Origin: Rebecca billardiae RCC1528
Taxonomy: Eukaryota > Protista > Haptophyta
Direction: 5' to 3'
NCBI GenBank assembly: GCA_965240325.2
Contig: OZ251230.1
Location: forward strand, 1,860,001 to 1,924,000
DNA length: 64,000 nt
The notes beneath the pieces are model-generated. The model was given only the letters and a program-made list of their open reading frames with translations, made no database searches and was not told the origin of the DNA. Below, piece after piece: positions 8,223-64,000 of the stretch (positions are counted from its first letter, which is position 1; each line of letters starts with the position of its first letter). The translations under genes were made by a program, and so were the position numbers.

Positions 8223-9722
8223 ATGGCGGCGCTCAAGCGCCAGTACGAGGCGCCGGCGGACGAGGACGGCCGTGGGCGCACACCGCCGGGAGGCGTGAAG
8301 CCATGGCTGCTAGTGGCTGGCGTGGGTGTCGCGCTTGTGCTTCTCGCGGCGTTTGACGCCGGCTCCGCCGTCTCGTACCGGCCAGCCGTGCGCGCGGCTC
8401 AAGTGCCGCTCCCTGCTGCGAGCAAGCAGGGGCTCGGCCCGCGCCGCCACGAGCCGCGCCCCCAGTGCATGACGGGCGCGAGCGCACAATGCCCACCAGC
8501 ACCAGCGCCGGAGTTCTCCGGTGCGCGGCGATGGGCCGCCGACGCGCTGCCCGACCACCTCGCTGCGCTGGACGACGCCATTGCTCGCTCGACCACTATG
8601 CCCTCCGCCGCCATCGACGCCCGAGAGCTCCCGACGCTCTCGCCGGCCGCTGCGGCGACGGCATCGGCGGACCCGGTGGCGTTCGCGGCGCAGCTGGAAG
8701 GGTTCCTCGAGTACGGCTCGCGCCCGTTCGTCGCGCTGCCCGCGTACTGGAACACGACGGTGACGGCGGCGCTGCGCGCCGAGCTGCGCCGCTTCCAGGA
8801 GGCCGGCTGCGCCGAGGCGGGGGAGGGCGGCGACCAGCGCACCTTCGAGTGCGAGCGGTACTCGGCGCTGGCACAGCGGATGCGCGACGACAAGCTCGTC
8901 GCCGAGGTCGCGCGGAAGTACCTCGGCATGCGCCCCGGCGCCCCCTTCAAGCGGCACACCGTTCTGGCAGGGCGCGTTGCTTACTCGCCCGGCAGGGCGG
9001 TGTCGTCTGGCGGCGGGTGGCACCGTGACAAGGGTGCGTGCCGCGCCGCGCGGGGTGCGTGGGGATGGTGGGGGCACCGCGTGCGTCGCGCCTTCGTCTC
9101 TGACCCGCCATGCGCCCTGCCTGCGCCGCCGCCCCCCGCCCACCGATCCCACCGCCGCGTGCGCTCTGGACGTGTGGCCAACTGCCGCCATTTTTTGGGC
9201 TGAAATTGCTTGTTTGGATCTCGTCGTGAACGAAATGATGATGCATGCGCTGCCGGCGGGCACCTCTGCGCTCCAGCGGTCAAGGGCATCAAGTCCATGC
9301 TCTACTTGGAGGAGGTCACGCGCGAGAACGGGCCGTTCACGATGCTGCTCAACTATGACGACGCGACGCTGGCGGCGGCGTACGACCACGCCGACGCGAA
9401 GGGTCGCAAGACGCGCTTCAACGACACGGCGGTGCACCGAGCTCTGGACCCAGCGGCTGCGTCGGCGGCGCGGCGCGCGGCGCCGACCGCGCTGGAGATC
9501 TTGGGCGCGCCAGGCACGCTCGTCATCTTCCTCACGCACAACATTCACCGGGGCAAGCTGCTCGAGCGCGGCGAGCGCACATCCATCACGACCTACTACA
9601 ACGTCGGCCAACCGCCGGGCGGCGCAAAGTACCGGGCGTGCACACTCGACGCACGCCCGTCCGCCAATCTGAGCCAGGGCAGCGCCTTGCAGGCTGCGCG
9701 CAGACGCAGCAGGCTGCGATGA
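8223..9722 (+). CDS. Membrane-anchored PhyH-like Fe(II)/2-oxoglutarate dioxygenase (intron 9034-9276)
   Basis: Splicing GTGCGT...CTCCAG gives in-frame GGWHRDKAVKGIKSMLYLEEVTRENGPF...GAPGTLVIFLTHNIHRG...ERTSIT, an HxD...H triad plus Arg. TM segment WLLVAGVGVALVLLAAF. Confidence 0.8.
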
Positions 9723-14685: not shown

Positions 14686-16805
14686 TGGCCCGCGGTGCAG
14701 GGCGGAGCGCGTAGCGTGGAGCCCCACCGGGGGCCCTCACTAAGTTACTTGAGTCACTACGTTGTCAAAAAGATCTTTTGATCAAAGAAAAGGGGACGGG
14801 GGACGATTTTTAGGGTTGTTGGAGGGTGAGTTTTCGATTTTTTGAGGGGTACGGTACAATGCTGTCCATCCCAAGCTTAAAAGGCCGCGCCCGGGTCATT
14901 TCGCGTATGTCGTTGGACGGCCGTCACATTGTCAGTAAACGAATCTGCGCCATTGGGTAATGCCCGGGGCCGGACTCCGCCCAGCACCAGACAACAGTGA
15001 TCCACTCCGGACTGGGCGGTCCGGCGATCGCTCCCGGCGATGAGTCGATGACCAGTGGACCTCTCGACCCGCAGTCAAACGCCGGCGACGCGGCGCGGGC
15101 GCGCAAGACAGATCAGAAATCCTGATTCCTGGACGCGCACGCGAACCGGCTCGGCATGCGGAACGCGTTGATGCGCTTGGGGACGCACGACATCGGGCCG
15201 TTCTGAAACGACACCGGGCGAAACTCTACCGCGTGCACGCGCGGACCGGCGGACCGCAGGCCGCGGCGTGACGACTGCGACACTGCGCGACGCGAAGGAG
15301 CAGGTGCTGGCGCCGCAGATGGCGGTGCGGGCGTTCTGCCCGAGCTGCAACAACCCGCTGCTCTCGGGCCAGGTGCATCAGCGCATCCAGGACCGCCGCT
15401 GCCACGTGCTAACCAAGGTGGTGGGCAAGTTGCGTGCGCCGAAGACACTACGCGACCGTGTGCGAGCAAGGCGTGCCAAGATGATCGACACGGCGAAGCA
15501 GGTGGTGATCGAGGCGCTGAGCCTGATCATGGTGAGGCGCATCTTCTCGACCTGCCCGACGCGCAGACCACGCAGGCGTCGCTTCCGGGCGCGTGGGACT
15601 CGCGCACCAAGACGGTGTGGCGCGTGGACCCTGTCGCCAAGGCGGTCAACTCCGCCTGGCCGCTGGAGGTGGTCGCTCGCCGCGCCTGGCCAACCTGGTG
15701 CACGAGGGGCCAGCTGATGGCGGCGGTGGTGCCACCGATGAAGCTGATCTTCGTGCAGCGCAAGGACGCGTCGGGCCCGTTCTCCCACGTGCTCAAGATC
15801 GTCTTCCGCGTCGCGACGATGAGCGTCGCTGCTCTGTGCGCGGCGCGCGCGCGCGCGCGCGCGCGCGACGGGCACGTGGCGCGCCGACCAGCCGTACGGC
15901 GCTGACTGTTGACGCACCTCGCGCATGCGCTACCCCGGCCGCGCCGCCGCCGCCGCCGCGCAGGCATGCTCTCGTAGGAGGAGACGGCGGAGCTGCGCGC
16001 ACACATGGCCGCGCGCGGCTCTCGGTCGGACGGTCGGCGATCACGGGCGCGCTGCCGGCCCGGCGCGCCGCTGAACGACGAGTAGGCCGCGCTGGAGGAG
16101 TACGTCCGCCGCCGCGCTCCGCCTGCGCGAGCAGCGCTCCGCCGCGCCCGACCCGCTGGCCGAGCAGCTGCGCAGCGACCGCGCCATCGCAGAGCAGCTG
16201 CAGCGCGAGGAGATGGCGGCACGCGCGGGCGGCGCGCCCGTGACGCTGCACTCGGCCGAGGTCGACGAGGACGCGCAGATGGCGCTGGCGCTGCTGCTCG
16301 TGTGCGAGGCGTGCGACCAGGACACACGCGCGCTGCGCAACGCTGAGCGCCGGATCCGTTTTCGGCGCCGTAAGGTGCGCAAGGCGCTGGCAGCGGAGCG
16401 CACCGGGGCGGCGGCGCATGCGCGCACGCGGCGCGCTCGCGGTCGATGCGCGGCAACTCCAACCGCCTCGGCAAGCGCAAGCAGCGGGACGATGGCGGCG
16501 CCGCGGCGGCGGGTGCGATGAACAAATCGGACGAGCGCGCCAAGTCCCGACGCATCGCCAACGCCGCCAAGCTGTTCGAGGACATGGACGGCGACGAGAT
16601 CGCGGCCGCGGCGCACGCGGCGGGCAAGCTGGACTGCCAACTTGCGACGCGTCTCGCAGACTGCCACTGCCACTGGGCCTGGCCCATTATAAATCTTCAT
16701 ACGACATTGAGCAGCTACGACATTGAGCAGCCGAGCAGCCGACGGAGGGTGCACCGCGGGCCCCTAACTGCGTTGGTTCTACGGAAGGACCGCGGAACGC
16801 GGTCA
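14686..16805 (+). mobile_element. Rolling-circle-like element, family A (diverged 2.1-kb copy with decayed cargo ORF)
   Basis: Starts A|TGGCCCGCGGTGCA. Inverted copy TGCACCGCGGGCC at 16750-16762, hairpin GACCGCG-GAA-CGCGGTC at 16788-16804, end TCA|T. Both ends match the elements at 37892-40936 and 41086-42377. Confidence 0.8.
15126..16726 (+). pseudogene. Frameshifted cargo gene of unknown function inside the element
   Basis: Coding-like fragments in several frames (FCPSCNN; DRAIAEQLQREE; DEDAQMALAL; CEAC) broken by stops and frameshifts. Confidence 0.5.
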
Positions 16806-17583: not shown

Positions 17584-17654
17584 TAGTGCATTGATCATCG
17601 GACTGTTCGACATCAGCCACGGTCAACTGCTACTGCTATAATTCGATGACGATA

Positions 17655-17853
<199 letters not shown>

Positions 17854-18123
17854 GCGGTTATATTAAACTATAACGACGATCGGCGGCAGCTAGACCTTAG
17901 CAGTAGCAATTCCTCATCACTGTCAGTTGAGTGCGCTGCTGCGATGAGCCGCTGAGACCCGGCGCCAGTCGTCGGACCGCGTCCGACCCGCCCCGGCCCC
18001 GGGCCTGAGACGCCTCGGAGTCGGAGAGTGACTGAGACGCCTCGGAGTCGGGTGAAGACGTCGGCGGATCACTGCGCGCGGTCGAGTCGTCCACGACGAC
18101 GGTACATGGGACCGGTCGCGCCT

Positions 18124-20883: not shown

Positions 20884-22437
20884 TCATGAGGCTTCTGGGA
20901 CGAGTGAAGCCATGTGTGCGAAGAGATGGTTGGCGATAGTCATGTGCACTTCGCGCCTGGCGTACCAACCGTGCATCCGGGCAATGTCGGCCGGCCGGTG
21001 TTTCTGGCACTCTTTCGCACCTTTGCCACGCGGCAGCATGCCGGGAGGCAGCTTCTTGCCCGTCGTCATCGCCATGGGCGACGCGCCCTTCTCCAGCAGC
21101 GCCTTGACCACCTCCAGCCGCTGGTCGTCGTCCGAGCGATCATTCCACGCGCACGCCCAATGGAGCGCGCTGAGGCCATCACAGTCCTGAGCGTTCGGGT
21201 CCGCGCCGGCCGCGAGCAGCGCGCGCACCGTGGCGACGCGGCCCCAGTGCGCGGCCCTTGTGAGCGCCGTCGCCTCGTTGCACTCGAACATCGCGTGATT
21301 CACGTCCACTGCCGAGCAACCGAGCAGCGCGTCCACCGCGCCCACGTACTCCCCCTTGTTTAATTGGATCGCCAGATAGAGGGGCGTACCCACGTGCTTG
21401 AACTCGTAGTTGGGGAAGGTGGCGTCGTCGCACGGGCAGGAGCGCAGGAAGTCCAGCAAGCTCTGCGTCAGCCCCTTGTCCTCGCAGTGCTTCGACTCGC
21501 GCCGGATCGCGAGTTCCAGCAGCTCCGCCAACTGCTGGCGCGTGAGCTTGGCCGCGCTCGTGCCGGCGGCGGCGAGGCCATCGGCCACCGTTTGCAAGGC
21601 TGCCGGGCGATCCTTCCCGGGGGTGTCCCTGATGGCGACCTTGAGCTGCTCGTAAAATTGTGAAATGGGATCTCCCCGCGCACGCTTCTGCGACGGGCCC
21701 GCGCTCTGAGCCGCCCGCGCCTGGCCCGCCCGCGCCGCCGGCGCGCGCTGGGCGTCGGCGCGCGGCTGGGGCTCATCTTCCCGCGCACGCTTCTGCGACG
21801 GGCCCGCGCTCTGAGCCGCCCGCGCCGAGCCCGCCCGCGCCGCCGGCGCGCGCTGGGCGTCGGCGCGCGGCTGCGGCTCAGCGGCGCGCGACGCGCGCTC
21901 GGGCGGAGTGGGCGGGACGTGAAAGGGCGCGGCTGGGCTGGGGTCGACGGCTTGCACCCTGGCCGTAGTGCGAAGCAGCCCGTCGCCACGAGCGTCGCCG
22001 TCGAGCCGTGCGGGCGAGGTGTACGCACCCGCGGCGGGTGGCGCCGTCGGCCCGACCGCAGCATCCGCCCGCGATGCGCCGTGCCATGCGCAGTCAAGCG
22101 GTGCGGTCGAGACGCGGGTGGCATCAGCTGAATCCAGTTCGACCACCTGGGCCTCGCTCTCGTTCTGCATGCCGGCCGTGTCCTCCCCTGTCTGCTGCCT
22201 CAGCAGCGCGTCGGCTTCCGCCTGCGCCGCCTCCAGGTTGGTCGCGGCGTCAAACCTCGCCTTGGCGAGCAGCTTGCCTGCCTTGAGCCGCGTGGACAGG
22301 TCCGAGGTCGAGCGCATCTTGGTCTGGGCCATGACTTCGCCGACGCTCTCGAGCTCGAGACTGTCCCCGAGCAGGCTCTTCACCAGCTCCAGCGCGAGCC
22401 ACGCCTGCTCGTTCACGTCACGCAGAGCCGACGACAT
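20884..22437 (-). CDS. Ankyrin-repeat protein with N-terminal coiled coil and 35-aa tandem duplication
   Basis: GTPLYLAI, TALTRAAHWGRVATVRALLAAGADPNAQDCDGLSALHWAC, VVKALLEKGASP. 105-bp-period tandem repeat at 21676-21879. Confidence 0.85.
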   Translation of the reverse strand: MSSALRDVNEQAWLALELVKSLLGDSLELESVGEVMAQTKMRSTSDLSTRLKAGKLLAKARFDAATNLEAAQAEADALLRQQTGEDTAGMQNESEAQVVELDSADATRVSTAPLDCAWHGASRADAAVGPTAPPAAGAYTSPARLDGDARGDGLLRTTARVQAVDPSPAAPFHVPPTPPERASRAAEPQPRADAQRAPAARAGSARAAQSAGPSQKRAREDEPQPRADAQRAPAARAGQARAAQSAGPSQKRARGDPISQFYEQLKVAIRDTPGKDRPAALQTVADGLAAAGTSAAKLTRQQLAELLELAIRRESKHCEDKGLTQSLLDFLRSCPCDDATFPNYEFKHVGTPLYLAIQLNKGEYVGAVDALLGCSAVDVNHAMFECNEATALTRAAHWGRVATVRALLAAGADPNAQDCDGLSALHWACAWNDRSDDDQRLEVVKALLEKGASPMAMTTGKKLPPGMLPRGKGAKECQKHRPADIARMHGWYARREVHMTIANHLFAHMASLVPEAS

Positions 22438-24281
22438 GATGATGACCGCGAACGGGACGACTGCGCCACAGCGCGAGGCCGCGAGCGCGCCCGGCCACGG
22501 CCAGGCGGAGCCAGGATCGGGCGTGGCGGCCGCGAGTCTGACTCGCGCCGCGCCGCTTGCGCAGGCTGATGCGCAGCCCTCACGGCGCGCACGCCCCCGC
22601 GCGCCGGCCAGATGGCACCCGGCGACACGGAGAAGCATCTCCGCCCCTCGTCTCTCTCCGCCGCGCAGGCCTGTTGCATTTCACCTGGCTCGGCCCGCGC
22701 TGCACGCACCCGCGCCCTAGATGCGGCGCGCGCGTGGCCCATGCAGGGCGAATTTCGAGCTGCTCTTGAGCTTGGCAAGTCGGGTCATACGCGAGTATCT
22801 GCTGCAAGCGTGCTCGTTCGTGCGCGCGGCGAGTCGCCGGCGCTGGGTGAGCTAGTGAAGCCGAAACAGTGCATCAAGTCAGCTGCCATCCAGACCGCAT
22901 GGATGCGCTAAGTTGCGTTGGCGCGCTGCCTACTGATCGGTCACGTTGGCGCGTCGACATGGACAGCTTATACAGCCTAGATGCTACGCTCATAGCAGTC
23001 GTCGATCGCGAGCGTGCGTGCGCTAGCCTGCGCTGAGGCGCCGATCGGCGCACGCGCTTGCAAGTCATCAGACTTGCTGCTGCGGCGCGCCCACCGGCCC
23101 ATGGATCTGACCGCAGAGGCGGCCGCAGACCGGTGGAGTGTGGCCGTGCGTTCGCTCATGAGCTGATAGCGGCAGTTGTCGATGGCGACGGGGCGGGCGC
23201 TTGTGCACGAGGCTCGTCGTGGCCTGCTTCCTCGGCGAGCGTGCACTTCGTGACAACGTGCGTGATGAAAATCGACTGGCCGCGAGCCTTGGCTTGGCAA
23301 CCTGCGCGTCCGCCTGACGCACCGCCGCCGGCGGCTGAGGCGCGTCAGCGGCTGCGCGCGGCGGCACGTGCTGCTCGAGCTCATGCACCTTGGCTGGGAA
23401 GCTCGCGCTCATGTCGCAGAGGGCTGCTGGCGATCGGGGCGAGCCTCGGGGCGCGCTCGGCGCATCGCGCAGCCGCAGCTCTGAGCTCAGTGGCCGGCCA
23501 CCTTGTCATGCGCGAGCAGGTGCGGCGCGGCGGTGAGCAAGGCGTCGGCCGTCATCTATGGTACCAGTGACAGCCGCGGGCGACTATCAGAATTATGCGC
23601 CCATGCACGCGCTGTGCTGCGGTCAGCTGCAACCCGCTGAGTCGTCTGTGTTGAGTCTGGGCGGCAGTCAGCGGATGATGATGAATCAGGAAATCATGAA
23701 CGCCGAAGGGAGTCGGCGCCGATTCATTCTTCGTTCAGTGGCTCAGTCATCGACGTACATCGTCAGTAAGCTACTACTGCTTCGTCCGACGACTACGACT
23801 ACTCGTCAAAGATTATATATATTCGGTTATTGTACTACTCGATGACTACGAGATCTCCCATGCAGCCAGTAGCTAGTTTTATTCGCGGTAGCTACGTATC
23901 CGGCATGCATCAGCCATCATCATTGTGCATGCATCAGCCATCATCATCGTCGGAGCTGACTTGCATGCTACCCAAAATGCGCGCAGCAGGGCTGCTAAAG
24001 CTGTGCACAGGAATAAGCGTGGGAGGTAGACTCTGGTGACCCTGCTGGCAATATAGTAATATACCTAGATTTTAGGCGGTCATACGCTTGCGCATGCCAC
24101 GCGCCCGGCAGTACCGAGTACGGTCTCATTGTCCGCCGTGAGCACACGATCTCGTACACGTCGAGGTGACGACCGCCGGGCGAGATGACGGACTTAGCGT
24201 CCCACTATCTCAGGGTCGCCGTTCACGAGGAGGGGATCCAACTGGGGCAGAAATGGCAGCGCGGCGCTCGCTTGTCCCTCG

Positions 24282-25076
24282 TCAGGCTGCGCGCTCATCC
24301 GCGCCGCAGCTTGGCGCGGCGCGCCTCCCGCCGTCAGCTCGCAGGGCAGCAGCGGCCACAACTCGAAACGGGCTGGGGTCGGTGACATGCGATCTCCCCG
24401 AGCCGGCAGGGGCGCGTCGCGACTCCCACTGGGACTCGCAACGCACCCCGCTGACCCAATCTTGAGGGATTGCACCAAGCCGCCAAGCCGCCGGCGCGCC
24501 CTGGGCGTCGGCAAGCGGCTTCTGCTCAGCGGCGCCCGCCGTGCGCTCGGGCGGTGTGGGTGGGACGTGAAAGGGCGCGGCTGGGCTGGGGTCGACAGCC
24601 TGCACCCTGGTCGAAGTGCGAAGCAGCCAGTCGTCACGGACGTCGGCGTCGAGCCGTGCGGGCGAGGTGTATGCACCCGCAGCGGGTGGCGCCGGCGGCC
24701 CGACGTGCGATGCGCCGTGCCACGCGCGGTCAAGCGGTGCGGTCGAGACGACGGTGGCTCCTGCTGAATCCAGGTCGTTCATCTGGGCCTCGCTCTCGTA
24801 CTGCATGCCGGCCGTGTCCTCGCCTGCCTGCTGCGTCAGCAGCGCGTCGGCTTCCGCCTGCGCCGCCTCCAGGCGGGTCGCCGCGTCAAACCTCGCCATG
24901 GCGAGCAGCTTGCCTGCCTTGAGCCGCGTGGACAGGTCCGAGGTCGAGCGCATCTTGGTCTGGGCCATGACTTCGCCGACGCTCTCGAGCTCGAGACTGT
25001 CCCCGAGCAGGCTCTTCACCAGCTCCAGCGCGAGCCACGCCTGCTCGTTCACGTCACGCAGAGATGACGACGACAT
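24282..25076 (-). pseudogene. Truncated duplicate of the ankyrin gene N-terminal half
   Basis: ~24489-25079 is a close copy of ~21840-22440 (LRDVNEQAWLALELVKSLLGDSLELESVGEVMAQTKMRSTSDLSTRL). There are no ankyrin repeats and the tail is unrelated. Confidence 0.7.
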
Positions 25077-25211
25077 GATTATGCCCAGCATTGTCGTCAC
25101 AACTGCCCCGGCCGGCCGTCACCGGCCGTCACTCCGTCTGAGACGGCGCAATCTCTTTTGGTCACCCTTCACATCGATCGATGGCCTCCTCAGGCTCCTG
25201 ACGGCGCGCCG

Positions 25212-35777: not shown

Positions 35778-36634
35778 CTAGTCGGTCGTCCTACTGGCCA
35801 CTGCTACGGTCTACTGTACGCGACTCGTAACTAGTCGTACTTCGTAGCTTACTTGTAGGCCGGATCCGTATGCAGCGTATACTCTATCAGAGTAGACTCA
35901 GACTTGTCAGTGTGACAGTCGCCCCTGCATATTACGCGTACTGTAACTATCGCGTGGCATCATCATCGTTAGCAGAGAATAGTAGCGCAGTCACTGAGCA
36001 GCGTCGTCGTAGTAGTCATAAGCTATTGTCGGAGTCGGACGGTGTCTGTCTGATGGTGGTGTCGCCGCCAGACAGTCGTAGCCACCGTAGTAATAGTTCT
36101 CAATCGCGGGACTCACACTGGCTCACTCATTGCACGCGCTTCACCGGCCATCCGGGATATACACTATACAGTGCGGCATGCTCGTGCCTCTAGACGGGCA
36201 TCGAGCGGTGGCGAGCTCGCCAATCGCGTGGCGTAGACCCAGAGAACGTTGCCACAAGTAGCAGCCCTGATCAGCTTGCTAGCCGATGTCCGTCGATGAT
36301 CGCCCGGCTGTTGACAGGCGTGCACACGTATGCAGCATCACTCATTGAACAGCAGCTGTCTGACGCGGTGACACGACTACTGTACAGTACCAAACAGCCA
36401 ACCCTGTTCGTCAGACTCACGACGTGTGGGGTCTGACGGACATTGACATGTCTGCACCCTCGTACAAGACTACTACGCAGCATGCGACGGGCATTCAGCC
36501 ATTCACGGCTTCCATCACGCCCCGGATGTCGTGGACGTGAAAGCTGACGATGACGAAAGTGCATGCTGTTGGGACATGCGGACGACGACGGGTAAGGGTT
36601 CCAGCGTACTAACTACGGAGCGAGTGAGTGAGCG

Positions 36635-37429
36635 ATGCCGTCGTCGGCGCGTGCGCCGCAAAACCAGCGCAACGGCGAGACGAGCTGGTGGCGTGGGGGG
36701 CAGAAGCGCGACTCGGCGCCCTTCGCTCGCCTGCGCGACGTCGAGCCGGGCCTCGGGGCCGACGGCAAGGCGGCACACCTCCACAGCTCCGGTGGCGAGT
36801 CCGGCCACTGCGAACAGGACCTGTGGGCGTCTCTCCCGCTGCTCGCGCGCGAGCAGCTCGCGCTGCTGATCTCGGCGGACTTCTCGGCGGGCTTCTTCTC
36901 GCTCGCGTCGCGCGTAGGGGCCACCGTGCCCGCCGCCATCGCCCCCCCCGCCGCCGAGACGAGCGAGAGCGCAAAAGTCGATGTGCGGCTGCGCGCAGTC
37001 GAGGAGCGGTGCCGCGATCTCGAGTCGCTCGTGAAGGAGCTGCTCGCCGAGCGGGCGGAGCGCGGCAAGGAGGGCGACGCGAGGCGGCAAGGGAGCGAGT
37101 CTCAGCCCAGCCCCGCCGCGTCCGAGCGGCTGCGACGTGACGGCTCCTCGGCGGAGGGCGGCTGCGGCCCAGTCACAATGCAGCTCGTGTTCGGCCTGGT
37201 CGTCTCTCTCTACCGCGTGGTCGAGCACTGCGTCTTCGGCTACTTCGTCGCGTTCATCTCGTGCTGGAACGTCATCCTGTGGGCGCTCGTGACGATGGTG
37301 CTGGGCTACTTCCGTCTATTGGCGATTCTGATCGAGCGCCTGCTCGAGTGGCCGACCAACATCATCTGCACGACGGGTGTGGCGCTGATTCTGCTCATCG
37401 TCTTCTTCGCGCCACGGCCAGTCGCGTAA
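36635..37429 (+). CDS. Hypothetical membrane protein (coiled coil plus C-terminal TM segments)
   Basis: 264-aa ORF with host-like codon bias, VRLRAVEERCRDLESLVKELL and a hydrophobic C-terminus. Confidence 0.55.
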   Translation: MPSSARAPQNQRNGETSWWRGGQKRDSAPFARLRDVEPGLGADGKAAHLHSSGGESGHCEQDLWASLPLLAREQLALLISADFSAGFFSLASRVGATVPAAIAPPAAETSESAKVDVRLRAVEERCRDLESLVKELLAERAERGKEGDARRQGSESQPSPAASERLRRDGSSAEGGCGPVTMQLVFGLVVSLYRVVEHCVFGYFVAFISCWNVILWALVTMVLGYFRLLAILIERLLEWPTNIICTTGVALILLIVFFAPRPVA

Positions 37430-37891
37430 CCTATCGCCCGCAGTGGCACTGTCATGGCTGTGACTGACAGGTGTCGTCGTAGTAGTGCTAATAATAATAA
37501 TATATGTAATAATATTTGGAGTAGAGTGCGCGACGACGCGCTCAGGCGCGCCATTCATCTGTCGGCGTCATTCACGGACCATATGATACGCGACGCCGAT
37601 TAAGACTCGGCTCGGCTGCGAAGTGCTATTGTGTCATCAGCAATGTGCCCAATATATGTATGGTGTGAATGACGAAGTATCACATCAGCATCGGCAGCGG
37701 CGTAACTGTCATTACGACTTCTCGTCACGACTCATCGTAGCAGTCATGGCACGGACTCGTCGTCCGGATATCTGCAGCAGAGCGCGGCTGATCCGGAGCT
37801 GCGCCAGGCCAGTGGGCCAGGGCCCAGCCCCAGGCTAGCTCACTGCTGATGAGACATGCATATGCAACTGCTGCATCAAGTCATATAATAA

Positions 37892-40800
37892 TGACCGCGT
37901 TCCGCGGTCCTTTTCTGCATAGAATCAACGCAGTTGGGGGCCCGCGGTGGCCGTGCAATCGCGGCTCTCCGCCGTAGTTGCAGTTCGCCAGTTGAAGTCG
38001 GTTCTGAGATGACTGAATATGATCGGCTACGCCGATCTTCGGGTAGTGAACAACGAAGTTGACGGCGCACGGCCCTATAGTGGCTAGTTGTCGCGTTCTG
38101 TCTTATTCGTCACGAATCACGCAGCTTGTGAATGTGAGCAGCAGCCGGCTTGTGACGACACGGTCGGACGGTCGGACGGTGCCATGCGCCGAATGCAGCC
38201 GAGTCACTGGCGAGTCCGACAGCCGGGCGGCGGCGCCGGGGGTGCACGCGAGCTCGCACGCGCGTTGTGTGCGCAGCCGCGCTGCGCGTAGAGCAGCCAC
38301 TCAGCGCCGCGCCCGACCACTACGCGAGAAGCCGCTGCGCCGCGCGCAGCGGCAGCAGCGGCGCCTCCGCAGCGCGCGCCGAGCCGCCACCTCCCGCCCG
38401 CCTCACGGCCGCGGCCGCGGCGCGCGAGCGACTTGCGGCTTGCGGCGGCGGCGGGCAGCGGCGGCGCGGCGAGCGCGCACAGCGGCCCCTCGAGCGTGCG
38501 GCCGAGCGCCGCCGCGTACGTCGGGTCGCGCGCCGCGCGCCGTCGCCCACACGGCAGCAGCCCCGCGTGCGCCGCCGTCTGCCACGAGGGCGCGGAGCAC
38601 GGTGGTGCACACATTTTGGAGGCGCGCGCCGTCGAGGCGCGGGACGGGCGGGAGGGCGGACGGGGGCGGGAGGAGCGGCGGCGGCGGCGGCGGCGCGTTG
38701 CGCGAGCCGCAGCGTACGCCCGCGCCGATCTTGAATCTCGACGGCGGCGGTGCGGCGGCCGTGGCAGCGCGTGCGCGCGCGTTGACCAACGGCGGCGCGG
38801 CCTCTGCCGTCTGCGACGGCGGCACGGTGCGGCAAGGGCAGCGGTGGCGCGACGGCGTCGGCGGTGGCGCGCTCGCACAGCGTCTGCCGCCCGCGTGCGC
38901 CGCCGTCGTCGCCGTCGTCGCCGCGACGGCGGCACTGTGCGCCGACCGGTTAGCGCCCTCCGGCTCCGCCCCTGCGCTGACTGACGGGACGCCGAGGAGT
39001 TGACGGAGGGCGTGCGCGCGAGGTCGGCGGCGGTGTGCGCGGCGGCGCTGGGCGAGTGCGCCAGCTTCTCGGGCAGCGCATGCCCCGCCGCGCGCCTGCC
39101 GCCGCCCAGGCTCCCCGGCGCTCGGCCGCGCGCCACGCCGCCGCGCGCGCGCACGGGGCGGCACGTGCGCACGGCGGCACCGACGGAACATGACGCCTCG
39201 CGATCTGAATCGTCACGCGACTTATGCTGGTAGTCTTATTTTCGATCACACCCGCATTGGCTTCGGAATCAGTTTGCAATAAGGGGTGAGGAATCTTGAG
39301 TGACAATCGCAATAATTGCCCTTCCGCTCAGGCTGTCTAGGACACACTCACTACACTTCTTTCATCAGAGAGCTCTTAATCCTCGCAGATAAAGATTTCG
39401 AATCCCACCCGCATTGGGCCAAGAAGCCAATAACAGATGACTTCGTCCTATTTGCTTCCGATTTCTTCTATTACTTACTATCCAAGGATTAAGGAGCAGT
39501 ACAAACGCAATCATGAGCAGCGAAATGGACTCATTCTATGATTTAACGACACAGGTAGGACGACGCGGGTCTCCTGATTCGTCGGCGGCAGTGCCCGATC
39601 GTCGACACGAAGTCGGCGTTGGACTCAAATGCTCGGTTTCACACCTAAATCCACCTACAAAAATCCCCCCAAATCCTGCGCGCATCCTCTTTTTTGATTT
39701 TGATGCGGAGCACGTGCGCCGCCCCCCCCGGCTTTCGCTCACGCTCAGACCTTTCGGGGGGGCCGTGCGCCATAAGCTATTACTAGTCCGACCGTCGCCC
39801 TGCCTGCGCGACCGCGAGACTCATTCACACTTCACACAATCACAGCAGCGGACCTGAGACCGCACCCGGCACCGGTCGTCAAATCGGACGTCCGTCTGAC
39901 AACTAGCTGCCAAATGTCCAACTGGCTGATCAGCTCGGATCCGACCCGTCCGCGATCGTGCCATCGGCATCGGAATTACTACTAGTAGCTGCCAAACTGT
40001 GTCCAACTCTGGCTGATCAGCTCGGATCCGACCCGTCCGCGATCGTGCCGAGTGAGTCGTGCCGCGGAGCTCGGAGTACTGAAGGAGTCGGGTGTGACAG
40101 CAGGGTGCTTTAGCGCTGCGGCCCGTGCCAGCCAACGACCAGACGTACTCTGGCCACTTGACCCGTTGCACGGGTGAGTGACCGTACGCCCTGCCTAGTG
40201 CCTACCGCGCGCGCCGCGCGACCGGCGACTCGGGGTGATGGAGAGCGGATGGCGACAGCAGCAGCAGTCCTCATGAAGACGATGAAACTGGCGGCACGGG
40301 TGCACGAGGTGGCAGGCGAAAGCGCGCCGACGAGACCGCATTTGACACACCTGAGCCGCACGCGCGTGCCGTCGCCGAGCCGGCGAGCGCTGCAAACGCG
40401 CAACCGTACCGCGCGCGCCACGACGGCGCGGCACTAGCTGATGCAGGCCGTACTGCCGGCACTGCTTCTGCGATCATGCGCCACGGTCGCAGCTGACTGC
40501 GTGAGCAGCAAGCGGGAGGCGGGTCCGGAGGCACGTGCAGGCGCCGTCCCGCATATCCGCCATCGCCCATCGTGCCGGGGCACGTCACCTCCGACGATCC
40601 GGATGTGGCCCAGTCCGGACGTCACGCGATCCGGGAAGACGAGTACGATTCGCTCGTAACGAACCGTTACACTTATGTCACGGCCAGGCTCACGTCCCGT
40701 CCATCGATTACTTATGGAATCAGCTGGGCGCGCTCTTTTTCGGCCTAATAGACCTCTCTATGCGATCTCAAAAACTCGAAACTCGGTCTCCGCCAGCCCT

Positions 40801-40936
40801 AAAAATCGCCCCCCGTCCCTTTTTTTCCGCCGCCCCCCGTCCCTTTTTTCTTGACGATCAAAGATCTTTTTGAAACGTGGTTCGGGCCCGCTGGTGCGGG
40901 CTCCACGCTGCGCGCTCCGCCCTGCACCGCGGGCCA
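37892..40936 (-). mobile_element. Rolling-circle-like element, family A, interrupted by a nested family B element
   Basis: On +: A|TGACCGCG-TTC-CGCGGTC hairpin at 37893-37909, GGCCCGCGGTG at 37939-37949, other end CACCGCGGGCCA|T at 40936. Without the nested insert it is 1292 bp, the same length as 41086-42377. Confidence 0.9.
38020..39772 (-). mobile_element. Rolling-circle-like element, family B (nested, 1753 bp)
   Basis: On +: A|TGATCGGC-TAC-GCCGATC hairpin (38021-38037), CAACGAAGTTG, GGCGCACGGCCC (38064-38075) inverted at 39760-39771, end GCGCCA|T. It is absent from the sister copy, which reads GAATAT-AAGCT at 41210-41219. Confidence 0.88.
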
Positions 40937-41085
40937 TAAGCCGATCATAATAAGCTATCGGCATCGACCGTCCGAACTACTCGCTCATTAGTCGTCGTCA
41001 GTACGTACTCGATCAATAGCTACTCGTAATTCTCGAGTACTCCCGGATGCGGCGCAGCTGATACAATATATTATGACCGCGGAAA

Positions 41086-42377
41086 TGACCGCGTTCCGCG
41101 GTCCTTTTCTGCATAGAATCAACGCAGTTGGGGGCCCGCGGTGGCCGTGCAATCGCGGCTCTCCGCCGTAGTTGCAGTTCGCCAGTTGAAGTCGGTTCTG
41201 AGATGACTGAATATAAGCTATTACTAGTCCGACCGTCGCCCTGCCTGCGCGACCGCGAGACTCATTCACACTTCACACAATCACAGCAGCGGACCTGAGA
41301 CCGCACCCGGCACCGGTCGTCAAATCGGACGTCCGTCTGACAACTAGCTGCCAAATGTCCAACTGGCTGATCAGCTCGGATCCGACCCGTCCGCGATCGT
41401 GCCATCGGCATCGGAATTACTACTAGTAGCTGCCAAACTGTGTCCAACTCTGGCTGATCAGCTCGGATCCGACCCGTCCGCGATCGTGCCGAGTGAGTCG
41501 TGCCGCGGAGCTCGGAGTACTGAAGGAGTCGGGTGTGACAGCAGGGTGCTTTAGCGCTGCGGCCCGTGCCAGCCAACGACCAGACGTACTCTGGCCACTT
41601 GACCCGTTGCACGGGTGAGTGACCGTACGCCCTGCCTAGTGCCTACCGCGCGCGCCGCGCGACCGGCGACTCGGGGTGATGGAGAGCGGATGGCGACAGC
41701 AGCAGCAGTCCTCATGAAGACGATGAAACTGGCGGCACGGGTGCACGAGGTGGCAGGCGAAAGCGCGCCGACGAGACCGCATTTGACACACCTGAGCCGC
41801 ACGCGCGTGCCGTCGCCGAGCCGGCGAGCGCTGCAAACGCGCAACCGTACCGCGCGCGCCACGACGGCGCGGCACTAGCTGATGCAGGCCGTACTGCCGG
41901 CACTGCTTCTGCGATCATGCGCCACGGTCGCAGCTGACTGCGTGAGCAGCAAGCGGGAGGCGGGTCCGGAGGCACGTGCAGGCGCCGTCCCGCATCCGAC
42001 GCCATCGTGCCGGGGCACGTCACCTCCGACGATCCGGATGTGGCCCAGTCCGGACGTCACGCGATCCGGGACGACGAATACGATTCGCTCGTATAACGAA
42101 CCGTTACGCTAAAGTCACGTCCGGCTGACGTCCAGATCGCACTTTACTTATAGGGAATATCGTGGGCGCGCTCTTTTTCGGCCTAATAGACCTCTCTATG
42201 CGATCTCAAAAACTCGAAACTCGGTCTCCGCCAGCCCTAAATAAAAATCGCCCCCCGGGCCCGTCCCTTTTTTTCGCCCCCCGTCCCTTTTTTCTTGATC
42301 AAAGATCTTTTTGAAACGTGGTTCGGGCCCGCTGGTGCGGGCTCCACGCTGCGCGCTCCGCCCTGCACCGCGGGCCA
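41086..42377 (-). mobile_element. Rolling-circle-like element, family A (uninterrupted 1292-bp copy)
   Basis: Same termini as 37892-40936 and near-identical over its first ~900 bp. Contains an internal ~85-bp-period direct repeat (GGCTGATCAGCTCGGATCCGACCCGTCCGCGATCGTGCC x2). Confidence 0.92.
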
Positions 42378-42512
42378 TTAATATTTAATCAGCTACGACT
42401 GAATGATCGGTCGTCAATGATCATTGCAGTCTCAATAATACGACTATATTCGATTCAATATCGAATATGGCGACCGGATATTAGATGACGACGAAAATAA
42501 GCGCAGCAGCAG

Positions 42513-42744
42513 CTACTGTTGCCACGCCCGTGGATGCTGCTGCTGCTGCTGCGCGGCCGCAGCCCGCAACATGTTGGCCGCTCGCCATTTCTGCTTCTGC
42601 TGCCACTGCGCAGCTGGCGACAATCCCGCAGAGCCAAAGCCGCCACCCGCCTGTAGCGGGGCACGAAGTGACGACCCAGGCAAGAGCGGTGCGCTGGCCC
42701 ACGCGGGCTGACCGGGGCCTTGACCAAAGGCGCGCATGGCGGCA

Positions 42745-42776
<32 letters not shown>

Positions 42777-43946
42777 CATCACGGCCGCTGCTAGCTCGGG
42801 CCGAAAAAAGCCCGACTGCTTATCCTGCCCGGGGATGAGGAAGAATCCCGTCACCTTGGTCGGCGTGGGCACAGCGCCCTCCGCGCCGAGCCAGCCGACG
42901 TCGGCGTGCTTCGCGCGCGCGAGTCCGGCGCGCCCGCGCAGCTCGTTCAGCAGCGCGACCACCGCCATCTCAGGCGTGCCCGGCTGGCACTGATGGTAGG
43001 CGCCGGGTGTCTTGCACTCGCGCCACATCGGCCCGGGCGCGTTGCACCAGTGCGCGGCGATCGGAGGTCGGAGGTCGAGGCGGTCGACGCCAGGCATGTC
43101 GCACAGCGCGGGGTCGGCCTCCTGCCAGTCCTTGACCACCATCACGCGCTTCTGCCCGCCCTCGCCCACCGCGCCGCTCGAGCCCATCGCCTTCGTCATC
43201 GTCGAGTGGAGCTTTGCCATGCGCTCGCACGGGTAGTAGCGCATCTCTGGCTTGGCCTGATCCTCCCACCGGCTGGTGCACGGCGGCACGGGCGCGGAGT
43301 GGGTCTTCCACAGCATGAAGCATGGCGAGTTGGGCTGCATCAGTACGACGTGCGTGAAGCGCTCCCGCGCGATGAGCTTGCGCACGTTCGACACGATGGC
43401 GGCCGTGTTGTTGTCGGCGTGCTGGTACGTCGGGTCGTTCACGACGACCGTCAGCCGCGCGCCGTTGCGGAACTCGATGGCGTGCGAGTCGAAGAGCACT
43501 TCGTCCTGCGCCCACTTGAGCACGCACGACTTGAGCGTGGAGCTCGCGTTGACAAGGGGCGTCTCGCCGCACTGCTTGTCCGGGGACGCGAGCGAGCGCA
43601 CGCGCCTGGGCGGCGGGTTGTTGCACATGATGGCCTGCGCAAGCTGCAGCGTGATGCTCGTGCCGTACAGCAGGATGTTGGCGCCAGCGGGCAGCAGCAT
43701 GGCCTCGCGATCGATCGGCGGCAGGTTGGAGAAGTGCGCCGTGCGGTAGATTGGGCCGTAGCACCGGTGGCCGTTGCGGATGTACGGGCAGAAGACCTCA
43801 CTCGGCACGCGCTTGGCCGGGTACGGGCCGCGCGCGTGCCACGCGCGGTCGTCGATATCCATCCAGCGGCCGACGCGGCCGAGCGCGCTCATGGGGAGTA
43901 GGAGGAGAAGGAGCGCCCCCAGCGCCGCGCGCCGATCGCGCCCCAT
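42513..43946 (-). CDS. SGNH / PC-esterase (TBL-like) secretory-pathway protein, candidate polysaccharide O-acyltransferase/esterase
   Basis: Signal peptide AALGALLLLLLPMSALG, ILLYGTSITLQ (cf. GDS motif) and GAYHQCQPGTPEMAVVALL (cf. DCxHWCLPGVPDxWNELL). The 3' end is uncertain. Confidence 0.65.
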
Positions 43947-44175
43947 CCGCGCGTCAGGTGCGCTCCCCCATCCGCGCGTCAGGTGCGCGAGTGATCCGTG
44001 AGGACGCGGCGCCGCCATCATTGCCACCAGATGCGTCCAAAAAAAGGCCGGTGTGACTGCAGAATTCATTATTCAGATGGGAATTATCAACGTACCCCCA
44101 TAGCGGTTGCAGCCCACACGCACGCGTACGCAGCCTTCGGTACAGCAGTCACTGTGATCAGTCATTCAGTGCCAC

Positions 44176-52558: not shown

Positions 52559-52564
<6 letters not shown>

Positions 52565-55500
52565 ATTAATCCCGAATTTCCTCCGTGCACGATTTCTTTT
52601 CCTCTCCAGCAGGCGCTTGGATCCAACCGCCAGGAGAGGTCGAGTACCAGGTACTACTCGCTGTCGTACCTGCCCTCCCTGAACCGGCACGAGCGCGCTC
52701 GGCCCCTAATCCTATTGCTTTCGCCGCTGCCCGCAGGCGAACGCAAGCCGCCGGGTACGTATGTCCGTTTTCCCCCGGCGCTATTGGTCTAACGACCTAT
52801 CAGTTTACTGGTGCCGTTTGCTTTTGCACCTGTGTGGGACGACTCCCGCACCGCCCGCTCGTCCGCACGGACGACGCTGCTGACGACGTCCGCAGGGACA
52901 CTGTGATAAGCCCCTGCGTGACCGGGGAACTGGTAAGGCGGAATAAACATCATGAGCTCACGCGTGTGAACCCACGTACCGCCGGGCATGGCCCACCCGA
53001 CCGGTCGCAGCGTCGCGGGTGTCGCGACGAACGCGCGGGCAATGATGCTCGCGTGCAGCGCGCTCTGCATCGAGCAGCCGAGTGAAAGCGCGCAGACGAA
53101 CCAGATGCCCACGCACGGCGTGGTGTACGAGTTCGGTGACTACCAGAAGGACATCCGTTACGCAACCTCGAATGTCCTCCGCCTGCAGGGCGGCTGCGCG
53201 CGCGGTACGAACCGCGCGAGCATTGACGTGCCCGCGTGTGGCACTTGCGGTGACGACACCGCGGCGGGGGCCTGGATGGTCCTCGTGATCGACAACGTCG
53301 AGCACGAGCTCGATGATGATGGGAATGGAGACGATCCATACCCTTCACGGCATCCGCTGAGGCCGATGCTGCGAGCGCCCCGACCATCCTCACGAGAGGA
53401 CAGCCGGACTGGGCGCGAGGTGCTGCTCGACGACGGGCAGCAGCAGGTGATACACTCAAAGGACGTGTACATCATTGATGAGCAGTCGCTGGTCGAGGGG
53501 AGGCACACTCCATTCGCGGCCAGCGATGACAGTGCCGAGCCCGAGACTGAGCTGGGAGACGCCGCTGACGGCGAGCTCACCGGCGAGGGCGACGAGCATT
53601 TTGAGATTGAGGACGGCGCGGCCGATGACGGCGGCGCTGCTGCTCATGACGACGGTGGCGCGGCGAGCGAAGCTGCGCGACCGAGCGCCGACGGCGATGA
53701 CGCCGGAGGCGATGACGACGCACGAGCTGGTGAGTCCGCGGCGCCCGAGCTGCCGCGCGACTACGACCCGATGCGACGAGACCGAGCGAGGCGGAGCAGA
53801 CCCGCCGCGCAGACGGTGCAGGCTGTGACCGAGGCAGCGTTCCAGGCCGCGGGCGAGGAACGTACCGAGGAGGACAGCTTCGAGGCATTCGCTGCGACGA
53901 CGATCGCGCGGGTGAATGGTGTGCCGATCACCATCCCCACGACGTGGGACGAGGCGATGAAGTCGCCCGAGGCCAAGCTCTGGATGCAGGCCTGCCACGA
54001 CCACCTCGACGCGCACGGCGTGAGACACACGTTCTTCGAGGTGATTGTGCCGGACAACACGCGGACGATTCCTGTCAAGTGGGTGTTCGACGTGAAGACG
54101 CTTCCCGATGGCGAAGTGATCAAGTTCAAGGCGCGGCTGGTAACCCAGGGGTTCCGCCAGCGCGAGGGCATCGACTTCAATGAGGTGTTCGCCCCGACGA
54201 TACGACCAGAACAGCTGCGGCTGATGCTCGCGGTCGCGCTCAAGGCCAAAGGCGTCTCGATGACGGACGCGGCGAGCGCCAAGATCGTGGAGATGCGACC
54301 CGCCGACGTGCGGCACGCATACCTGAACAGCGACCTGCCGGAGGGCGAGGAGGCGATGACACCGCTCCCGCCTGGCTACACCCCGAAGAGCTCGACGCCG
54401 CTCGGCTCGAAGGTGGTCGCGAAGTTTGTGAAGGCGCTCCCAGGCATGCGCCAGGCCGGGCGCGTGTGGTACCTACACTTGCGTAAGTGTTTGCTCGAAC
54501 ATGGGTTCGAGCCGTGCCCGAGCGCGCCGTGCATCTACTCGAAGGCAGTCGATGGCGGCTACGTGTTCGTCGGTCACTTTGTCGACGATCTGCTGATGAT
54601 GAACATCTCGAAGGACAAGAACGCGTTGGACGCGCTGATGACGGCGTTGCTGACGCACTACGAGATGCAGGGCGCGGACTGCCTGAGCAAGTTCCTTGGC
54701 GCCGACTTTGAGACCACGGTGGACGGACTTTTTACCCACCTGAATCAGTACATCGGTGATGTGTGCGAGCGCTTCCACCTGAGTGGAGAGCGCCACCCAC
54801 CGACCCCCGAGTGCAGCGAGACGCGCGAGATCCCCCGCCCGCTGCAAGCCCTCCTGCTGCGCGCTGACCGCCAGCACTACCAGGAGATGACCGGTGCCCT
54901 CATGTACTGCATGACGACGTGTCGCCCCGACATCGCACACGCCGTGAACATGCTGGCACGCCGGATGTCCAATCCCCGGCTCTACGACTTGACCGCCGCG
55001 AAGCGCACGCTCCGATACTTGCTCGGCACGCGTCGGCGCGGCATCCTCTTCCGGCACGCGACGCACGCACAACACCCTGATTTGGTGGCGTACGCGGACT
55101 CAGACTGGGCGAACGATCGTGAAGATCGACGTTCTACGACGGGGTACCTTGTTATGTACAACGGGGTCCCGATCTCGTGGCACAGCGGACTGCAGAGCGT
55201 GGTCGCGTTGTCTACGTGCGAGGCGGAGTACATCGCGCTGAGCGAGTGCTGCCGCGAGGTGATCTACCTGCGCGACCTGGTCACGTTTTTGAACGAGCCG
55301 GTCGTGGAGCCCACGACGGTGATCTACGAGGATAACCAGGGCACGATCGATTTGACGAACAACCCGGTGCACCACAAGCGCACCAAGCACATTGACGTGA
55401 AGTACCATTTCACGCGGCGCGCGCAAGCCGACGGCGCCGTGCTGATCCAGAAGGTGTCGACCGACGACAACCGGTCCGACATCATGACCAAGGCTACCGC

Positions 55501-55980
55501 GACGAGTACTTTTCTCAAACACGTCGTGGCGATACTGCATGCTGTTCCACCACCTCCGCCGCCTTCGGCATGATGTCGAGGGGGGGTGTTGTATTAATCC
55601 CGAATTTCCTCCGTGCACGATTTCTTTTCCTCTCCAGCAGGCGCTTGGATCCAACCGCCAGGAGAGGTCGAGTACCAGGTACTACTCGCTGTCGTACCTG
55701 CCCTCCCTGAACCGGCACGAGCGCGCTCGGCCCCTAATCCTATTGCTTTCGCCGCTGCCCGCAGGCGAACGCAAGCCGCCGGGTACGTATGTCCGTTTTC
55801 CCCCGGCGCTATTGGTCTAACGACCTATCAGTTTACTGGTGCCGTTTGCTTTTGCACCTGTGTGGGACGACTCCCGCACCGCCCGCTCGTCCGCACGGAC
55901 GACGCTGCTGACGACGTCCGCAGGGACACTGTGATAAGCCCCTGCGTGACCGGGGAACTGGTAAGGCGGAATAAACATCA
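52559..55980 (+). mobile_element. Ty1/Copia LTR retrotransposon, internally deleted
   Basis: 394-bp LTRs TGTT...ATCA at 52559-52952 and 55587-55980, PPT GAGGGGGGG at 55578-55586, inserted in a (TA)n tract (TATAT on both sides). Confidence 0.95.
52988..55573 (+). CDS. pol: Truncated Copia pol: reverse transcriptase (RVT_2) + RNase H
   Basis: KWVF...KFKARLVTQGFRQREGIDFNEVFAP, HFVDDLL, YADSDWA, STCEAEY, IYEDNQG, RTKHIDVKYHF. Confidence 0.95.
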   Translation: MAHPTGRSVAGVATNARAMMLACSALCIEQPSESAQTNQMPTHGVVYEFGDYQKDIRYATSNVLRLQGGCARGTNRASIDVPACGTCGDDTAAGAWMVLVIDNVEHELDDDGNGDDPYPSRHPLRPMLRAPRPSSREDSRTGREVLLDDGQQQVIHSKDVYIIDEQSLVEGRHTPFAASDDSAEPETELGDAADGELTGEGDEHFEIEDGAADDGGAAAHDDGGAASEAARPSADGDDAGGDDDARAGESAAPELPRDYDPMRRDRARRSRPAAQTVQAVTEAAFQAAGEERTEEDSFEAFAATTIARVNGVPITIPTTWDEAMKSPEAKLWMQACHDHLDAHGVRHTFFEVIVPDNTRTIPVKWVFDVKTLPDGEVIKFKARLVTQGFRQREGIDFNEVFAPTIRPEQLRLMLAVALKAKGVSMTDAASAKIVEMRPADVRHAYLNSDLPEGEEAMTPLPPGYTPKSSTPLGSKVVAKFVKALPGMRQAGRVWYLHLRKCLLEHGFEPCPSAPCIYSKAVDGGYVFVGHFVDDLLMMNISKDKNALDALMTALLTHYEMQGADCLSKFLGADFETTVDGLFTHLNQYIGDVCERFHLSGERHPPTPECSETREIPRPLQALLLRADRQHYQEMTGALMYCMTTCRPDIAHAVNMLARRMSNPRLYDLTAAKRTLRYLLGTRRRGILFRHATHAQHPDLVAYADSDWANDREDRRSTTGYLVMYNGVPISWHSGLQSVVALSTCEAEYIALSECCREVIYLRDLVTFLNEPVVEPTTVIYEDNQGTIDLTNNPVHHKRTKHIDVKYHFTRRAQADGAVLIQKVSTDDNRSDIMTKATATSTFLKHVVAILHAVPPPPPPSA

Positions 55981-56438
55981 TATATATATATAATATGCTG
56001 AACATCGCGCCCTGCTATCGTCATAGCAGCAGCCTACTGGCAGTATAACTGTACCATATACTCTCGGTGCGCTGGCCCCGTGCTGACCGTCAATGATGTA
56101 GCCTTCAGGCCTTCAGCGCCACAGGCTACTCCGCGGCGTGTGGTCGGCGTGAACTTGCTGACGTCATCATTCATCACGACGCCGCCGACCGCGTCACGTG
56201 AATGACGTGCGGTCCGGTCGGCGTGAATGACGTTGTAGTGCCAACCGGCGCCGCGACCGGCGAGGCGAACCGCGGGTCCGGACTCCGGTCAGACTCCCGC
56301 GTTACGCTAACGCGGGCCTCGCCAACCGAGGTTGATATATATATATGCTTTTACCAGCATTATATTGCTGTCCCGGCGGGCGAGCGCGGCTGTCATTATC
56401 TGAGACTCTGTGCCCACTGCCCAGTGCCTCACTATGAT

Positions 56439-63061: not shown

Positions 63062-64000
63062 GACACCCTTGGTTTCTCCACCAAGGGTGTCCAGGCAAGG
63101 GTGTCCAGGGTCCGCAACAGCCAGTGCGCAGCGCGGGAGGCTGTGTCATCGCGAGGTCGCCGCTCGCCAGTGGCACTCGCCCGCCCGCCGCCGTGCACGG
63201 CGGCGGAGCCGCTCGCGCCGTGCGCTCCTGCGGCCGTCGGATCGGGCTGCGTAGGCGGCGCGCGGCTTGGGCCGTCGCTGAGCCACCCAGCGCCCCTCGC
63301 TGCGCCGCGCGCCTTCCTCGTCCTCGCCTCCTCCGCGCCTTGAAGCAGCACGCACACGCGCGGCGCCGCCACAAAAGCAGCGCAGGCGCTCGCGTGCAAG
63401 CGCGCGCGCGCAGCGCGCGACGGGCTCGACTCAGGGCTCGCGCCGCTGCGGGGGCATGCAGCACCATCACATGCGCGCGCGACGCCACCTCGAACTTGCG
63501 CATCGCTGTGACCGTCACGCGCCAAATGCTCACACGTCCTCGTGTTGAAGTAGGCCCAATCTGACCAGAACCTGCCATGCGTCAGGACGACTTCTTAGGC
63601 AAGACACGATGACAGCTACGTACGCGGCGCTTCTCAGCAAGCGTGGAGACCACAAGAGAAGCGCACGCAAGCATGACCGTCCCCGCATCGATCGCGTCGA
63701 CGTACTCAAGGCCCGTTGTGGAAGCTTCCGTCGCACGTGTGATGATGCCAAGTCAGACCATTTTGTAACGTGCATCAGCGTGCACTGACGGTCAAACGCG
63801 CAGGCTCGAGGTGGCGTCGCGCGCGCATGTGATAGCACTGCATGTCCCCGCAGAGGCTCGAACACCGAGTCGAGTCCGTCGCGCGCTGCGCGCGCGCGCT
63901 TGCACGCGAGCGCCTGCGCTGCTTTTGTGGCGGCGCCGCGCGTGTGCGTGCTGCTTCAAGGCGCGGAGGAGGCGAGGACGAGGAAGGCGCGCGGCGCAGC
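63062..64000. mobile_element. Foldback / MULE-like element with long inverted arms, runs off the window
   Basis: 63299-63517 is the inverted copy of 63786-64000, with the outer ~130 bp near-identical. Hairpin GACACCCTTGG/CCAAGGGTGTC at 63062-63091. The left boundary is uncertain. Confidence 0.75.

Follow-up and report, generated by a model that had tools for sequence, protein, structure and literature searches.

The window analysed here is a 64-kb stretch (G000:C13:1860001-1924000, C13 being its contig) of the genome of Rebecca billardiae RCC1528, a eukaryotic assembly of 72 Mb in 41 contigs with a GC content of roughly 67%; coordinates given without a contig name refer to this window. Directly downstream of an open reading frame (ORF) ending at 37429 lies an AT-richer spacer, and in this spacer sits a cluster of three repeats, namely two copies of a family designated A (A1 and A2) and one element of a second family, B, which is nested in A1. 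A1 occupies 37892-40936 (3045 bp) and is split by B, a non-coding element of 1753 bp at 38020-39772, into a segment on the side of its hairpin (3') end (37892-38019, 100% identical to 41086-41213 of A2) and a segment on the side of its 5' end (39773-40936). The sister copy A2, in which the target of B is uninterrupted, is 1292 bp long (41086-42377). All of these are on the minus strand, which is the sense strand when the elements are compared with Helitron2 transposons. An element of a third family, C, 2120 bp in length, is found on the plus strand at 14686-16805 and has only the A-type termini in common with the others, i.e., a 13-nt inverted repeat and the same hairpin.

The insertion of B in A1 can be followed base by base. 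The plus-strand sequence of the filled site is ...GACTGAATA, then B from TGATCGGC... to ...GTGCGCCA, then TAAGCTATT, and the empty site in A2 (41205-41222), in which GACTGAATA is joined directly to TAAGCTATT, reads GACTGAATATAAGCTATT. The identical uninterrupted 18-mer is also present in four independent A copies at unrelated loci (L023, L024, L029, and L031; such numbers are labels of extracted genome loci). B was absent from all 20 aligned A copies besides A1, A2 being among them; five of the 20 (A2 and the four just named) carried the 18-mer and the other 15 a different short variant. Moreover, the composite of A1 and B was unique in the genome search. The preliminary description of this DNA had proposed a nested insertion with its empty site preserved nearby, and this proposal is borne out to the exact base by A2 and by the four independent copies. 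It had also pointed out that removal of the 1753 bp leaves 1292 bp, the length of the sister copy. These lengths are exact, but their equality is partly a coincidence because, beyond the first 910 identical columns of the alignment between A1 and A2, 49 columns including indels differ in the last ~390.

With B removed, A1 is 99.7-99.9% identical from end to end to the copies at L023, L024, L029, and L031, which are located on other contigs, while the last third of A2 marks it as a mosaic variant. A1 and A2 are therefore two separate insertions, 149 bp apart, with no local duplication involved; a simple tandem duplication was considered and rejected for these same reasons. At this locus, B arrived after A1. 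A third level of nesting is formed by an 86-bp insert at 39534-39619, flanked by an 8-bp direct repeat (TGGACTCA), which is private to the window copy of B and missing from nine other B copies, one of them 86%-diverged. This insert could itself be a small mobile element, or else a piece from the end of one. Pieces of ~90 bp related to it were observed in the C13 locus of a RepHel gene (see below) and in L035 and L037. In addition, a partial extra terminus of 12 nt (TGACCGCGGAAA; 41074-41085, minus strand) abuts the hairpin end of A2 and may be a relic terminus or a scar of end processing.

The ends of the elements share a common layout, which on the window minus strand is 5'-T-repeat...repeat'-spacer-hairpin-A-3', and the sense strand of all copies begins T-GGC. 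The terminal inverted repeat starts at nucleotide 2 in every full copy and comprises 11 nt in A (GGCCCGCGGTG), 12 nt in B (GGCGCACGGCCC), and 13 nt in C. Seen on the plus strand, the final A is preceded by 11-13 nt whose exact reverse complement is located 43-47 nt inside the hairpin end; the hairpin end itself consists of a T followed by the two arms of a perfect 7-bp stem, separated by a 3-nt loop. In B, the 3'-terminal hairpin (stem GATCGGC/GCCGATC, 3-nt loop) is located at 38021-38037, 1 nt from the end; the 12-nt subterminal repeat is at 38064-38075, 44 nt from the 3' end; and the 12-nt terminal repeat is at 39760-39771, one T from the 5' end, as the foot of a long imperfect stem-loop. 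The corresponding features of A2 are the 3'-terminal hairpin with the stem GACCGCG/CGCGGTC at 41087-41103 (37893-37909 in A1), the 11-nt subterminal repeat at 41133-41143 (37939-37949 in A1), and the 11-nt terminal repeat at 42366-42376 (40925-40935 in A1), which is likewise the foot of a 5' stem-loop; all of them are on the minus strand.

The hairpin stems of A and B differ at three of the seven positions and all three differences are compensated. Similarly, the inverted repeats of A and B differ in sequence, each being complementary to its own partner. The spacer between repeat and hairpin can be aligned between A and B and the families are therefore related. A 5' stem-loop closing 1-2 nt from the terminus is predicted in A, B, and C. 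When compared with shuffled controls, the fold of A clearly stood out (z = -3.8), whereas those of B (z = -0.6, not distinguishable from the shuffles) and C (z = -1.5) did not, because the sequence is so GC-rich. A scan of the 64-kb window by structure only (AT, a 10-mer, its complement, and a hairpin followed by AT) returned A1, A2, B, and C together with a few low-complexity matches. At their extreme ends, the elements showed no terminal inverted repeats and no duplication past the ambiguous AT. An exact head-to-tail junction of two A copies, GGGCCA-TGACC (here and below the hyphen marks the junction or insertion point), was found in L038.

The junctions read flank-A, TG...CA, and T-flank, and this held for the A and B junctions tabulated genome-wide with few exceptions, i.e., L011, an A copy with its first base mutated (L034), and three B rows in which poly-G expansions shifted the end of the alignment. 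In the window, A precedes and T follows each of the four elements (A1, A2, B, and C), in keeping with the earlier statement that AT stands at both junctions of the four copies, and 43 of the 44 hairpin termini in the DNA read are flanked by A and T. One base further out, T predominates on one side and A on the opposite side (TA-TA, often within (TA)n), but this position is variable. Since the conserved bases of the elements start immediately beside the AT, any duplication is at most the AT itself. Five empty sites carry a single AT, which fits an insertion between A and T or a 2-bp AT duplication alike. Judged from the junctions, the target is strictly A-T, and the remaining ambiguity of 2 nt, no duplication against one extra AT, lies beyond sequence alone. 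Both alternatives had been offered in the preliminary description and both are kept here.

The hairpin-end motif was found 1325 times in the 72-Mb genome against one occurrence of the reversed motif used as control, and the opposite-end motif 1394 times against 52 in the control; the two ends are therefore balanced in number. On contig C1, paired termini of the same type span 1.2-5.4 kb and fall into several size classes. B occurs on its own in ten near-full copies with BLAST identities of 97-100%, plus many diverged relatives, and the flanks of these copies are unrelated. The window copy of B shares 99.7-99.8% identity with seven other copies and 99.1% with an eighth, and altogether at least nine near-full copies besides it are at 99.1-99.8%; the eight closest copies are 99.7-100% identical among themselves. 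In the subfamily of A1, the substitution identity is 99.7-99.9%, and the two A subfamilies differ by about 2%. The 96% BLAST identity obtained for A is a product of gaps and of the divergent third of A2. Identities within subfamilies are thus similar in A and B, so both families were active at about the same time, recently and over overlapping periods. The earlier claim that B moved after A therefore has to be divided: it stands for this locus, where the composite is unique, but not family-wide, with 99.7-99.9% in A and 99.7-100% in B. That B is younger than A as a family was rejected, given the substitution identity in A and the origin of its low BLAST figure from gaps and A2.

The core of B (38200-39190), with 81% GC, had been tentatively taken as a sign of gene-fragment capture. 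Its GC content at the three codon positions is 0.79/0.82/0.82, compared with 0.69/0.51/0.89 in a neighbouring real ORF, and there is no third-position excess of GC in the core. Long ORFs of 262-322 aa are open on both strands, as is expected of stop-poor GC-rich DNA, and a Pfam search of them gave no match. Genomic matches to the core were multi-copy repeats without exception, with 88-93% identity in relatives of B and 77-79% in the others. For example, positions 276-589 of B recur as three tandem units of ~320-350 bp between B-type ends at C24:558656-560763, and five matches of ~710 bp, 79% identical, lack the listed B termini (e.g., C13:1440353). No single-copy donor gene was found among the genome matches, and no coding signal by Pfam or codon-position GC; the large protein search was not run on the low-complexity Arg/Ala-rich frames. 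Gene capture was rejected because codon periodicity was absent, Pfam was negative, and the core is common to diverged B subfamilies. Because all its matches in the genome are multi-copy repeats, partly in tandem, the core is rather an old component of the B lineage, internal and satellite-like.

Based on these results, A, B, and C, whose element type the preliminary description had left unnamed, are probably one group of non-autonomous, non-coding Helitron-like rolling-circle transposons with Helitron2-type ends, and they are highly abundant in this GC-rich genome. Helitron2 is defined by a T at the 5' end, by an inverted repeat that starts 0-2 nt from this end and forms a 5' hairpin, by a second, subterminal inverted repeat immediately preceding a 3' hairpin, and by insertion without target duplication (Bao & Jurka 2013, PMC3627910). 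A, B, and C fit this definition if the window minus strand is the sense strand. They are new members of an already known element type and not a new type. The boundaries, the empty sites, the A-T rule, the copy number, and the presence of RepHel genes are all observed directly, as are the architecture of the ends and the way it co-varies from one family to another, whereas the enzyme, the single-stranded circular intermediate, and the identity of the moving strand are inferred. A RepHel-type HUH transposase, consisting of a Y2 HUH Rep and a Pif1 helicase and supplied in trans, would nick between the A of the flank and the T of the element at one end and between the A of the element and the T of the flank at the other. 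One strand would then be peeled off and its ends joined as a circle with the junction ...GGTCA-TGGC..., and this circle strand would integrate between A and T of an AT-rich site, mostly TA-TA, without target duplication. The terminal inverted repeat would pair with bases downstream of it to give the 5' stem-loop. At this locus, A1 and A2 were already in place, 149 bp apart in the AT-rich spacer, when B was inserted between A38019 and T39773 of A1, and the 86-bp piece entered B afterwards. Tandem and neighbouring Helitrons have been described in the literature (PMC5148889).

A possible source of the transposase exists in the genome. Helitron_like_N matches were obtained at five loci, belonging to two types, in uninterrupted frames of 2606-3640 aa. 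Both RepHel types (C23/C33 and C39) contain the Pfam domains Helitron_like_N and PIF1, and the two copies at C23 and C33, both full-length, share 100% identity along the 1436-aa query. However, several observations weigh against the assignment of A, B, and C to Helitron2-type transposons moved by such an enzyme. No RepHel copy has A/B-type termini within the 100 kb read around the five loci (20 kb per locus). The C23/C33-type element ends ...CTGCCTCAA, without the hairpin-A and without an AT-rich flank, and a head-to-head duplication in the C13 locus yielded no terminus. The sole A-type end near a RepHel gene is a 119-nt fragment at local position 18124 of C39, on the same strand and 8.8 kb downstream of the RepHel stop codon, with at least three other repeats between them; it was rejected as the terminus of a RepHel element, being a fragment amid an LTR-like (long terminal repeat) element, a foldback element, and another repeat. 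The same-type pairs on C1 (1.2-5.4 kb) are too short for a RepHel of 2600-3600 aa, with the only exception being a pair 14.9 kb apart at C1:3179546-3194433, in which a 5' end and a hairpin end, both of B type, are oriented to match each other and have no other partner. This is the sole long candidate element on the contig, the further long same-type pairs there being A-A pairs of 5.0-5.4 kb, and it contained no RepHel match. Moreover, 43-47 nt separate the subterminal repeat from the end, compared with ~20-30 nt in published Helitron2, and the A-T target is the rule of Helitron1, while TTTT-T/C, T-T, and TNAT-A are reported for Helitron2 of Chlamydomonas, Helentrons, and FoHeli (PMC5148889). 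The 2-nt ambiguity also counts here, as sequence alone gives the same result for an insertion without duplication and for a 2-bp AT duplication.

Two other repeats were noted downstream of the apparently intact 2606-aa RepHel frame of C39 (C39:337001-357000; L050/L051). One is a multi-copy LTR-like element of 5.5 kb with terminal direct repeats of 276-283 bp, and the other a foldback of 1.1 kb with arms of ~400 bp, present in more than 25 copies that are 98-100% identical.

With more than 1300 young termini and no partner for them among the RepHel loci read, it is conceivable, though rather unlikely, that the group is driven by an undescribed enzyme or represents a distinct Helitron lineage joining Helitron2-type ends with the A-T target of Helitron1. 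Also improbable is a HUH single-strand transposon driven by a Rep other than RepHel, e.g., a Replitron-like or CRESS-like Y1 Rep working with host helicases. That the termini are shared with none of the RepHel loci read would agree with such an enzyme, as would the 6-mer ACCGCG near both ends of family A. Replitrons, which are thinly reported in haptophytes, are mostly without target duplication and have a palindrome at the right end (PMC10288648). However, short direct terminal repeats are defining for Replitrons; B has none, and the 6-mer, the sole end motif shared within A, is merely part of its palindromes. Asymmetric inverted repeats combined with two hairpins are the signature of Helitron2 and have not been described for Replitrons. 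A single CRESS-type Rep match (Viral_Rep, PF02407) was obtained in the genome, at G000:C33:808355-808483 (33 bits, in an open frame of 295 aa), but it is single-copy and linked to no terminus, and it may belong to an endogenous CRESS virus or represent a gene of the Replitron-like type. The Y1 transposase of the IS200/IS605 type (Y1_Tnp, PF01797) gave no match in the 72 Mb, although the same search was positive in six of 14 control genomes.

The single AT of the empty site and the two of the filled site could also be explained by cut-and-paste DNA transposons that duplicate a 2-bp AT target, the element proper then being G...C. This explanation is improbable, because no inverted repeat relates the two extreme ends, which are asymmetric, with a tight hairpin at one of them only and the partner of the inverted repeat 43-47 nt inside. 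Besides, exact head-to-tail arrays exist (L038), about 1300 copies at 98-100% identity favour a copy-and-paste process, and no element with these termini contained a transposase ORF in the DNA read. If a circular intermediate were integrated through crossover at an AT core by a recombinase of the tyrosine or serine type (Crypton-like or IS607-like), AT would likewise be expected at both junctions and only one AT at empty sites, one AT being derived from the circle and the other from the target. Five weak, multi-copy tyrosine-recombinase matches (Phage_integrase) are present in the genome. They are, however, below the Pfam cut-off and located in long frames elsewhere, unlinked to A/B termini; resolvase-type (serine) recombinases were not detected in the genome; and the end architecture agrees with a described type of HUH transposon, so that this explanation must be considered improbable as well. 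Finally, the idea that the 1753-bp segment is original to family A and was deleted from the short sister copy, named in the preliminary description as what would overturn the nesting, found no support and is ruled out, as the segment is missing in 20 of the 20 aligned A copies besides A1 and B stands alone at many loci with unrelated flanks.

An Rfam search of positions 36000-44000 gave no match and a scan of metagenomes for the A-type 3' end gave 0 matches. Several other repeats were noticed. About 250 bp at 17631-17886 are taken up by a long (CT)n microsatellite, which is consistent with a eukaryotic nuclear origin. Direct repeats of 395 bp, 100% identical and 3028 bp apart (52559-52953 and 55587-55981), resemble the LTR pair of a young element of ~3.4 kb. 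A direct repeat of ~600 bp with 90% identity (21839-22444 and 24487-25083, 2.6 kb apart) lies beside a 105-bp tandem duplication (21670-21879), and a foldback with inverted arms of 203 nt, 94% complementary and 296 nt apart, is at the window edge (63299-63501 and 63798-64000). Outside the window, an element of ~1.85 kb with the inverted 10-mer TACAGTGGGC at its ends is found within a long (TA)n tract at C33:768001-778000 (L054; local positions about 7164-9027) and is another TA-seeking repeat.

For annotation, the A, B, and C families account for a large share of the AT-island repeats in this algal genome, and they supply base-exact boundaries, an A-T target rule, and a structural signature. 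Standard Helitron finders seek TC...CTRR and would overlook them. With regard to mechanism, the two sister families, with their different but internally complementary repeats and hairpins, are a natural case of co-variation and as such evidence that the transposition machinery reads both structures. The understanding of Helitrons as such is unchanged, and the wider interest lies in which enzyme moves A, B, and C.

Among known systems, the bacterial Y1 HUH elements IS200/IS605 resemble A, B, and C in having a hairpin at each end, extreme ends without inverted repeats, and sequence-specific insertion of a single strand and, if the AT at the junctions is not duplicated, also in the lack of duplication. 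However, they are prokaryotic, insert 3' of a tetra- or pentanucleotide, and depend on the type of transposase that was not matched in this genome. Replitrons are nearer in being eukaryotic HUH transposons of algae, mostly without target duplication and with a palindrome near one end, but they possess short direct terminal repeats, which B lacks, and a Y1 Rep without helicase (PMC10288648). Canonical Helitron1 elements also insert between host A and T without duplication and have a 3' hairpin, and RepHel genes are present in this genome. Their ends, on the other hand, are 5'-TC...CTRR-3' with the hairpin 10-12 nt from the 3' end, whereas A, B, and C have TG...GGTCA/GATCA and a hairpin 1 nt from the end, in addition to a 5' hairpin and asymmetric inverted repeats. 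FoHeli1 of Fusarium resembles them in the T, stem, 3-nt loop, and return stem placed right at one terminus (PMC5148889). The single A after the 3' hairpin and the lack of a RepHel with matching ends among the five loci set A, B, and C apart from both FoHeli and Helitron2. Otherwise, Helitron2 (e.g., Helitron-1N1_CRe of Chlamydomonas) has a 5' T, asymmetric inverted repeats, a 5' hairpin, and a 3' hairpin just as A, B, and C do, and the two further agree in abundant short non-autonomous derivatives, in head-to-tail arrays, and, if the AT at the junctions here is not duplicated, in the absence of target duplication (PMC3627910; PMC5148889).

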